Source of the DNA: Macrostomum lignano
Taxonomy: Eukaryota
Direction: 5' to 3'
DNA length: 64,000 bases
Assembly: GCA_002269645.1 (NCBI GenBank)
Contig: NIVC01000232.1
Coordinates: 1-64,000, forward strand
Every line of letters starts with the position of its first letter. Within the stretch, counting starts at the first letter, position 1. A model generated the notes under the pieces. It did not search any database and was not told the DNA's origin. It saw nothing but the letters and a program-made list of their open reading frames with translations. The position numbers and the translations under genes are program-made. Positions 4,725 to 7,565 of the stretch are shown one piece after another.

Positions 4725-4731
4725 TATAAAA
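4725..4731 (+). promoter_or_regulatory. Candidate TATA box of the prepropeptide gene
   Basis: TATAAAA at 4725; Inr-like TCAG at ~4762; probable 5'UTR intron (donor 4887, acceptor 4980) before ATG 5024. Confidence 0.55.
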
Positions 4732-5023
4732 GGCGCCTGCTTTTGCCCCTGCAGCGTTTAGCTTTCTCACGTCAGACTTTTAAATAGCTAGCTCGCATTT
4801 TATTTGTTTAAAACTTTAATTCTTTTGAAGAGAATTAAACATATTACGTGTCTTGAGGACTTGAGCGTTTGCTTTTGAATAACCAGGTAGCATTGAAATC
4901 GCTTTTCAGTGACATTATTCTTTACCGATATCGCACCATTGGCATGTAAATTCGTGTCACTTTATCGCCTCACCTCACAGGTACAAAACTGTGTGCAAAC
5001 TTGCATCGAACTACCGCCTTGTG

Positions 5024-5365
5024 ATGTCAAACCGAAGCTCGCTGATGCAGCTTGCGCTTCTTGCGCTGCTCTTCTGTTCAACTGCCATTGTACAAGCCGA
5101 ATCTGAGATCGGTAGGTTTGAAATCACGCGCGTTATGCCGATCTGATAGGCCTTAGAGTGCTCTCTTACAAAGACTTCTGATCCCTGATTTCCACTTCCA
5201 GAGGATGACGACGTTGTGGATCCGTCGAGCAGAGCTGTCGACGACTCAATCGAGGAACCTCTTATGCCGAGCTCAACCACCAAACGGCGTGCTGCATCCG
5301 CGGGCCGGGAAAAGCGTGTCTTTGGTGGATTTCCATGGCCATGTAGGCCCGGCTACTGTAGATGA
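5024..5365 (+). CDS. Two-exon secreted prepropeptide, 83 aa (exons 5024-5111, 5202-5365)
   Basis: Spliced translation MSNRSSLMQLALLALLFCSTAIVQAESEIEDDDVVDPSSRAVDDSIEEPLMPSSTTKRRAASAGREKRVFGGFPWPCRPGYCR*. Phase-1 90-nt intron GTAGGT..TTCCAG; hydrophobic signal, acidic pro-region, KRR and KR sites; AATAAA at 5640. Confidence 0.75.
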
Positions 5366-7565
5366 AATCGTCATGCCATTTCTTAGCAGATCTGTCTGGA
5401 GCTTCTCGCTACGTTCTTGCAAGAACGTAACAGATCTGCACTATTTAAATATATAGGCAGAACTTACAAGATCTGCAGGAAGATCTTGCACGGTCTGCAC
5501 GAGCAGATCTTAGGAGATCTGGGCAGATCTTGTAAGATGTATTAAGCTTTACCAATTGAATGCATTGTCCGTCTTATCAAATCTTCCCAGATCTGTTTAG
5601 TAATCCATTTATAAAACCCCGATGCACTAATCTAATTCCAATAAAGAACACGAGTTATGACAGGACTTTCTTATTTGATTCTGCACTTTTAGTATTGTGC
5701 TAGTAAGCTGCCAGAACAAAATCAAATGTCATTGAACAATCAAAATAAAGTAGACATATTTATTTGTGAAAATGTAAACAAATACACATATATGCTCATG
5801 AAATAAAACTTGTATGCACAAGGGAAATAGCACAAGCAAAAAATAAGTCAACTTTAAAACAAAAGTTAAGCACACATTCAATAGAAAAAATACTAATGGA
5901 AATCAACTTGTGCTTTTCGTGTGTTCTAACAGTAGCTAAAACTTGATCAGAAAATTGTTCAGAGTGTCTTATTCATTTCTATAGTAAAACCCCCAAATCG
6001 GGAGTAGTATTGAGATCCGCTAAAAAGCGAGAAATCGCCTCAGGGCAGTAATAGTAAATTCGCCTCAGGGCAGGAGAACCGCCTCAGAGCGAGGGAAAGA
6101 TCGCCTCAGGGCAGAGAAAGAGCATAAGCTGTGACCCTCTGATCCAGGGAACGCCCAGGACTGAGAGAATAATATTTTTAGGGGAAGTATAGGAATAGAA
6201 TAGACAGTGCTATTAGACCGCTCAGGCCAGAAAGTACAATAGAAGTACATACGCTACCAATAGAAGTACATATGCTACCAATAGAAAGACAATTAATAAC
6301 CAGTAGATTTGTTAAGGAGAAATAGCTTTATTACAACTTTGGTGGCATTTAGTCGTATTCTAGGTGCACAGGAATCCCCCCTGTAACAACTGTGGTGGCA
6401 GCTAGTACGGCTAGCAAAAGAATAATTAAGAGCCCTGGGACAATAGCTATACTCAATCAACAAAGTTATTATGGCTAAAAAAATAGTCATACTACACTAT
6501 GAAACAAGTTAAGGAATTAAAATTACGTATTCGGCTAAGTCAAAAGAAAGAACTGAGATGGATGCAGAATTTCGCGAGAGAGATAGAGAGAGAAAAAAAC
6601 CCGAAATTAAACTTTTAGAGTTTTATTGGCCGTGTTCTGCGTGAGGATCTGTTACGACAGAAGTATATTTTCCTGCAGAAGTCAGATCATCTTCGCACAT
6701 TGTTAAACGGTGCTTGGATTCGTGCGTAGAAATTTTCTTGTGATCTTTACCGATATAATAACTTTTACCTCCATGTTTACAAAAGTGTGCAGTAAAGTTT
6801 TCTTTTCAAATTAAAAAGCACCGATTATCGACAATTAAGTTCTATGGTAGAGAATTGACATATAGCAAATGCTTAAAACGATGTACTTTATTTGAGACTG
6901 AGTTTTGTTTGAGAAGTAAACTAGCAATATTGTAGCTGTAGCCTGTATGGCGTCCAAAAACGTGAAATTTTCAAAATAGAAAATTTCTCAGAAAAAAATA
7001 GTTTAGTAGGAAGTGTAGTAAAATTGTGATGCCGCTTTTTAGTCTATCTACAAACGATACTTAGTTATAATATTTTTTTCCAGAATAGATTCGAAAACCA
7101 ATATGAAATGAGTTGTAATTAGAAGTTTACATTTCTATGAGTTTAATAGGTTGTAACTACTTAAAAATTAGTTCAGTAGTATACTTGGTTAATTACTAGC
7201 CTTTTAAGCTTCTCCAGAAGCGCAAAAATGCCACCATGAGGCTTCCATCTGTGTGCGAGAGCAATTTACGTTACTGTTTCTCCTTTATGGAATGACCCGA
7301 GTCAAAAAAATTTAAGCAGCCCCTTTTCATTTAGCTATCAAAGCTTTTCTCGGCAACAACAAAAACGCGCCTAGTGCCTATCGTCATTAGCCTGGGAATA
7401 TTCTGGTTCCCTGCAGCCTTAGATCCCCATATTTATTTGCCTTTAAGTCAAAGAATCAAATATTTCTAATAAATATTTTCTATTAACGGAAGTCAGCATC
7501 ATTTACATGTGTTGTTATCTCATTAATTGAATCAAAATAGACTAACTGAGCCGCTTTTGTAATTA

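Follow-up and report, generated by a model that had tools for sequence, protein, structure and literature searches.

We analysed a 64,000-nt stretch of the Macrostomum lignano genome (contig NIVC01000232.1, positions 1 to 64,000 of the forward strand; hereafter the window), which carries near its left end a small gene predicted to encode a secreted precursor of 83 residues with a cysteine-containing 15-mer at its C-terminus. As far as identity and origin alone are concerned, this gene is very probably an old, diverged paralogue of the predicted FRWamide precursor gene Mlig026077.

All features of the window gene lie on the plus strand. A TATA-like box (TATAAAAGG, 4725–4733; CTTAAAAGG at the aligned spot in the paralogue) is followed by non-coding exon 1 (4755–4886), which has a putative 5′ end and, in alignment with the two genomic copies of the paralogue (L001 and L002), closes at the conserved donor CCAG/GTA. 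The intron in the 5′-untranslated region (5′UTR) spans 94 nt (4887–4980) with GT..AG borders, reading CCAG/GTAG at the donor and CACAG/GT at the acceptor. Both sites occupy the same positions in the paralogue in the nucleotide alignment, and the acceptor at 4980/4981 is also used by a second public gene model, the chimeric P0003. Exon 2 (4981–5111) contains 5′UTR sequence (4981–5023), the ATG at 5024, the signal peptide and the start of the pro-piece; its coding portion, coding exon 1 (5024–5111), measures 88 nt and leaves a phase-1 intron. This coding intron is exactly 90 nt long (5112–5201, GTAGGT..CCAG), would bring in-frame stops if retained, and sits at the same codon position and in the same phase in the transcript-annotated paralogue, where it is 110 nt long. 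The coding portion of the terminal exon runs from 5202 to 5365, including a TGA stop at 5363–5365, and is followed by a 3′UTR (5366–5660) with an AATAAA at 5640–5645 ahead of its predicted end.

The spliced product of 83 residues reads MSNRSSLMQLALLALLFCSTAIVQA/ESEIEDDDVVDPSSRAVDDSIEEPLMPSSTT-KRR-AASAGRE-KR-VFGGFPWPCRPGYCR, then stop. Residues 1–25 (5024–5098) form a signal peptide, called by inspection and hydropathy, with a basic n-region (R4), a hydrophobic core at 7–23, and a predicted cleavage after VQA at −3/−1. An acidic pro-piece covers residues 26–56, with a net charge of about −10 overall, and the part encoded by the terminal exon (residues 30–56, 5202–5281) is homologous to the paralogue. 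It is followed by KRR (residues 57–59, 5282–5290), the spacer AASAGRE (60–66, 5291–5311), and a KR (67–68, 5312–5317) that lies inside the furin-type motif R-E-K-R. The terminal 15-mer VFGGFPWPCRPGYCR comprises residues 69–83 (5318–5362), with Cys77 at 5342–5344 and Cys82 at 5357–5359; its net charge is about +1.7, or about +0.7 for the 14-mer without the C-terminal Arg, and its grand average of hydropathy (GRAVY) is about 0.

Homology search returned a public model identical to the 83-residue product, UniProt A0A1I8J6K9, an “Uncharacterized protein” of M. lignano. The chimeric UniProt model P0003, of 1150 residues, contains residues 1–69 of the peptide gene and is spliced away after residue 69; it demonstrates that there is a near-identical second locus. 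Judged from its sequence, the 83-residue open reading frame (ORF) is a real three-exon gene, beyond chance, because the UniProt model is identical and the paralogue matches it with the same intron position and phase. An earlier sequence-only reading of this stretch had proposed the ORF, the 90-nt phase-1 intron, the KRR and KR sites, the 15-mer, the TATA box, and the AATAAA, all of which reading and translation placed where it had put them. Its layout of signal peptide, acidic pro-piece, dibasic sites, and terminal peptide was likewise correct, and the intron that it suspected in the UTR fits 4887–4980, given the splice sites conserved in the paralogue and the acceptor of the second public model. 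Its description of the gene as unannotated was mistaken, as the identical model was already public.

The first homology search found a single relative, BOX15_Mlig026077g1/g2 (PAA47094.1, PAA62704.1; UniProt A0A267ENZ8), at E = 4e-17. When 1.84 billion representative proteins were scanned exhaustively with phmmer, only the window protein and Mlig026077 were recovered (E = 1.3e-17, 66% identity over residues 1–80), and a search from the Mlig026077 protein returned the same two-protein pair. Pfam, NCBIfam, and the PDB sequences gave no match. Mlig026077 has two genomic copies, L001 and L002 (NCBI GCA_002269645.1), with identical coding sequence. The protein encoded in the genome has 149 residues, consisting of a signal peptide, an acidic pro-piece, KR, one GTTFRW-GKR, seven (Q/P)SGVFRW-GKR, and a short acidic tail, which amounts to eight tandem x-FRW-GKR units; its mature region contains no Cys. 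The deposited model has 129 residues and six units, so that two of the eight are missing, probably because the repeat was collapsed in transcript assembly. By this organisation, Mlig026077 is a clear multi-copy amidated (P/Q)SGVFRW-amide neuropeptide precursor with predicted FRW-amides as its products. Public records name it only “hypothetical protein”, and its identification here as a neuropeptide precursor is a result of the analysis whatever the fate of the window copy. The 15-mer, CRPGYC, VFRWG/PSGVFRW, and Mlig026077 were absent from the literature searched, the flatworm neuropeptide catalogues McVeigh 2009 and Koziol 2016 being outside its reach. The gene lies at 6001–6560 of L001 and L002. 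In the flanks of the two copies, about 1.5% mismatches plus indels were observed, or about 97% identity, as compared to identical coding sequences (P = 0.001).

At the nucleotide level, homology between the window gene and its paralogue starts at 4719, just upstream of the TATA box, and continues to about 5322 with 77% identity. Non-coding exon 1 is 77% identical to L001/L002 and includes highly conserved patches, for example at 4848–4890. The signal exon is identical at 84 of 88 nt (95.5%), compared with about 75% in the introns, and the signal peptide at 24 of 25 residues. The pro-piece has 80% nucleotide identity and an in-frame 3-nt indel, while the KR at its end and the KR at the boundary of units 1 and 2 are common to both genes. 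Similarity ends exactly past the stop codon of the window gene. From there, about 1.24 kb (5366–6601, +) has no counterpart in the paralogue and holds the present 3′UTR and poly(A) signal. It stands in place of the five remaining repeat units with their C-terminal tail and stop codon, as well as of roughly 25 nt at the start of the ancestral 3′UTR; in the paralogue, the matching interval is taken up solely by the remainder of the repeat array (about 200 nt). Behind it, a block homologous to the paralogue 3′UTR (6602–6802, +; blastn to L002 6585–6805, 68%, E = 9e-25) is stranded about 1.2 kb past the stop codon. A second duplicated block lies upstream (2938–3110, +; blastn to L002 5245–5421, ~79.5% identity). 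The 1.24-kb segment cannot be called a transposon, because a search within the window found neither terminal inverted repeats nor a second copy of it.

Some further features were observed around these blocks. A 34-nt tandem repeat, ACTTGTGCACCTCACCGATCACCAACCATGAGTC, with about 13 copies (3711–4147), separates the upstream syntenic block from the promoter, and a related array is found about 34 kb away (38396–38649), so that it looks like a dispersed minisatellite or an element-borne repeat. The present 3′UTR contains, within 207 nt (5388–5594), 8 of the 21 AGATCT palindromes of the whole window, mostly as (G)CAGATCT(G/T); this cluster is not present in the 3′UTR of the paralogue. The RNA fold of the 3′UTR is stronger than that of shuffled sequences (z = −4.5). 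An Rfam scan of 3–8 kb gave only sub-threshold chance matches, such as ciona-mir-92 at the 3′UTR (26 bits against a threshold of 56).

The C-terminal tail of the window protein can be read as the remains of FRWamide units. We anchored the tail alignment at the conserved KR and then compared the two genes codon by codon. In this register, KR-RAASAGRE-KR aligns with KR-GTTFRWG-KR of unit 1, VFGGFPWPCR with QSGVFRWGKR of unit 2, and PGYCR-stop with P(S)GVFRW of unit 3. Within the 15-mer, 7 of 15 residues (G, F, W, R, P, G, R) and 24 of 48 nt are identical. The protein score of 19 compares with −15.4 ± 7.7 for random stop-free 15-mers from the window (P = 5e-5), and the match is also significant against composition-preserving shuffles (P = 0.003) and at the nucleotide level (shuffle P = 0.0003). 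Relative to the paralogue, Arg became Pro within FRW, GKR became PCR, Phe became Cys in unit 3, and the TGG of the unit 3 Trp became TGA; the Cys77 codon aligns with the Lys of GKR and the Cys82 codon with the Phe of FRW. With GKR changed to PCR, neither an amidation donor nor a cleavage site is left between two units, which are thereby fused. No intact x-F-R-W-G-K-R unit is present in the window gene, in which in-register vestiges of three remain. Since the stop lies within a repeat unit, the comparison is most simply explained if the repeat array is ancestral and the window gene derived.

These observations suggest how the gene may have arisen and what it may produce. The FRWamide precursor gene would have been duplicated, and the window copy would have kept the core promoter, the 5′UTR intron, the signal peptide, the acidic spacer, and the dibasic sites. 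Unit 1 would have been worn down to the AASAGRE spacer, units 2 and 3 would have fused once the Gly-Lys-Arg between them became Pro-Cys-Arg, and unit 3 would have acquired the second Cys while its Trp codon turned into a stop. Unrelated DNA would then have taken over as the source of the 3′UTR and poly(A) signal. In the predicted product, the signal peptide would be cut after Ala25, and convertases would cleave after R58/R59 and R68. Carboxypeptidase E-type enzymes normally trim C-terminal Arg in prohormone processing, and such an enzyme probably removes the terminal Arg here. A non-amidated VFGGFPWPCRPGYC(R) would be released, in which Cys77 and Cys82 could form a six-residue ring around an Arg-Pro-Gly-Tyr turn.

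The pattern of divergence bears on whether the gene is still working. In aligned non-coding sequence 24% of sites differ, a Jukes–Cantor (JC) distance of about 0.30. In the signal exon, 4 substitutions separate the two genes over 88 nt, where about 12 would be expected had the window copy alone drifted (P(≤4) = 0.006) and about 21–22 had both copies drifted (P = 6e-7). The ratio of non-synonymous to synonymous divergence (dN/dS) is 0.17 in the signal peptide, where a single change falls on the 55 non-synonymous sites (P = 0.004), and about 0.7 in the pro-piece. Indels of 3 nt within the coding sequence, as placed by nucleotide-level MAFFT, keep the frame. The start codon, the GT..AG borders of both introns, the TATA box, and the AATAAA are intact, and the decayed unit 1 still has its dibasic site on either side. 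An essential PC2 homologue with neuronal expression is known in M. lignano (PMC4490696). Selection seems to have preserved the signal peptide, the splice sites, and both dibasic sites. The decay of unit 1 is old, yet the signal peptide has remained conserved, and the comparison suggests that selection continued to act on the gene as a secretory precursor once its FRWamide function had gone.

That the window gene is a diverged Mlig026077 duplicate still maintained as a secreted-peptide gene, with the predicted product described above, is in our estimate an evenly balanced proposition; its maintained role would most plausibly be signalling from neurons or secretory cells, like that of the parent. 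There is a substantial possibility, although short of a probable one, that the gene is instead a decaying duplicate, perhaps still transcribed and secreted, with a functionless tail in which the two cysteines and the short end of the ORF are accidents. Several results weigh on that side and against maintenance. All canonical FRW-amide units and the Gly amidation donor are lost, the array was truncated by a rearrangement that left about 1.24 kb of unrelated DNA right behind the stop and the ancestral 3′UTR stranded downstream, and the tail is the least conserved part of the gene (about 50% nucleotide identity, as compared to about 75% in the introns), which is the opposite of a typical neuropeptide gene. 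At least two Cys occur in random stop-free 15-mers with a probability of 0.12, which is not rare, though the C-x4-C spacing is less common (P = 0.016), and unanchored local alignments of the tail to the repeat array were not significant (P 0.08–0.11). Indexed NCBI and Logan gene calls do not include the 83-residue product, and the protein scans found no orthologue or further family member, a weak negative given the few Macrostomum species in the databases. In addition, the high identity around exon 2 (4939–5111) could be the result of gene conversion rather than selection. A decaying copy has, however, to be reconciled with a signal exon conserved well beyond neutral expectation even if only the window copy drifted, with splice sites, start, frame, dibasic sites, TATA, and poly(A) signal that are intact despite a neutral divergence of about 0.3 substitutions per site, and with a signal peptide that outlasted the old decay of unit 1. 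Taken together, the signs of maintenance modestly favour a still-secreted novel peptide, as predicted from the gene, over a decaying copy.

Two other explanations have less in their favour. A fast-evolving mature peptide of an antimicrobial, toxin-like, or protease-inhibitor-like secreted effector would account for the way in which conservation falls from the signal through the pro-piece to a mature end that has diverged strongly, as well as for a furin-type R-E-K-R site usable outside neurons and a ring rich in aromatics and Pro. But the net charge is just +0.7 to +1.7, the peptide is short and shows no clear amphipathic design, no Pfam, NCBIfam, or PDB entry resembles it, and the family has two members rather than being an expanded effector family. 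Its sole relative is a textbook amidated neuropeptide precursor, which argues that the window gene is not an antimicrobial or venom gene, and we regard the effector explanation as improbable. A chance ORF accompanied by chance signals would fit the shortness of the ORF, and it is effectively refuted, to the point of being hardly credible, by the match to the transcript-annotated paralogue (E 1e-17), the identical intron position and phase, the conserved promoter-proximal region, and the identical public gene model. The antimicrobial or venom-like role offered by the sequence-only reading is unsupported, given the low charge and the lack of a family match; the peptide that it called cationic does carry a positive net charge, albeit a weak one, the lower value applying after Arg trimming. 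Its alternative of a signalling peptide is reasonable, since the only relative is a multi-copy amidated neuropeptide precursor, but the origin from FRWamide copies had been missed. It had also looked to homologues for the KR site and both cysteines. The lone homologue keeps the homologous KR and lacks both cysteines; the C-x4-C ring is thus not conserved in the family, and neither is the mature peptide, as the tails of the two paralogues differ.

We thus return to the maintained, secreted duplicate as the explanation that we favour. A stronger form of it, in which the product is a new disulfide-cyclised, non-amidated signalling ligand with a new pharmacophore, presumably acting on a new or re-tuned receptor and restricted to the Macrostomum lineage, is tentative and on balance unlikely. 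If the peptide is made and active, the locus would be a compact and datable case of a new peptide signal arising in a flatworm model that is transgenic and amenable to RNA interference. On this route, a neuropeptide gene with many amidated copies would have been duplicated, an internal site for cleavage and amidation lost, two units joined, and a disulfide ring acquired. If the peptide is inactive, the gene is an ordinary decaying paralogue.

The rest of the window contains mobile elements, repeats, and ankyrin-repeat genes. An ORF at 421–933 (+) resembles the C-terminal part of a mobile-element protein, and a homology search anchored on it gave no match; the public model A0A1I8HF14 joins this ORF to exon 2 of the peptide gene and to distant sequence at 39.7–40.3 kb, and almost certainly represents a chimera produced by gene prediction at the near-identical second locus. 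A Ty3/gypsy-like retroelement (~21000–25100, −) has a gag-like zinc-knuckle ORF, reverse transcriptase (RVT_1), and integrase (rve); its GC content is 52–60%, compared with a background of 40–45%, and its ORFs are split between frames. A second reverse transcriptase fragment is found at 37400–38250. Long (GATA)n microsatellites at ~10890–11363 and ~50354–52408 are the source of artificial minus-strand “IYLS” ORFs and of GC-skew spikes. Ankyrin-repeat genes are present at 15854–17086 (−), 57584–60681 (−), 28635–31253 (+), and 44497–47029 (−), and two of the ankyrin arrays consist of a very regular 33-residue unit, GHLEVVKFLVETVADQNVRDQCCKEAAKSAASS. Two large ankyrin ORFs each adjoin a Mab-21_C-like ORF (32488–33933, +; 42078–43739, −), forming an inverted paralogous pair with about 78% nucleotide identity. 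The segment 28280–30137 is about 83–88% identical to 62325–63998.

Among known systems, the predicted ring invites comparison with urotensin II/URP and vasopressin/oxytocin-type peptides, which contain six-residue Cys-x4-Cys rings; in urotensin II, as here, a basic cleavage site precedes the ring, which closes the precursor at its C-terminus. The ring size of the window peptide is the same. Its ring is CRPGYC and not CFWKYC, which excludes urotensin II/URP membership. It is also not a member of the vasopressin/oxytocin type, as the ring is C-terminal (peptide residues 9–14), carries RPGY and not YFQN, and has no Pro-x-Gly-amide tail, and as the precursor ends at residue 83 with no neurophysin domain and no Pfam match. 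The comparison with vasopressin- and urotensin-type rings drawn by the sequence-only reading is better replaced by a view of the 15-mer as two fused degenerate FRWamide units with a premature stop, and the likeness is convergent at most, since the cysteines arose from the Lys and the Phe of FRWamide units.

Luqin/RYamide/RWamide precursors contain one or two N-proximal WRPQGRF-amide-like peptides and a C-terminal Cys-x10-Cys (x8 in C. elegans) (PMC7041311). They likewise combine an RF/RY/RW-amide family with a C-terminal Cys pair, whereas the pair in the window protein is Cys-x4-Cys and of recent origin. Neither the window protein nor the paralogue has a WRPQ motif or Cys-x10-Cys, and the parent has no Cys pair, so that luqin membership was rejected. 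Multi-copy FRWamide, LFRWamide, and LFRFamide (sNPF-type) precursors of annelids and molluscs have been described in Urechis (PMC7737342) and in Capitella and Platynereis (PMC6389622), and the Urechis FRWamide was reported to be species-restricted (PMC7737342). The parent gene is alike in design, with a signal peptide followed by several short FRW-Gly-dibasic peptides. Only the C-terminal tripeptide is common to them and the parent, however, with no detectable homology, and the window gene lacks the motif. Conotoxin and frog-skin precursors show the same gradient of conservation, from signal through pro-piece to mature peptide; these families are large and expanded, and their products have proved active in experiments, while the family here has two members and a predicted peptide. 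Compared with Mlig026077 itself, the window gene has lost the FRW-GKR hallmark and the amidation Gly; it has gained two Cys, stops prematurely, and has another 3′UTR. By descent it is still a member of the Mlig026077 family, as its signal peptide, pro-piece, introns, and flanking synteny indicate, and its protein retains the signal peptide and flanking dibasic convertase sites of a classical neuropeptide precursor.

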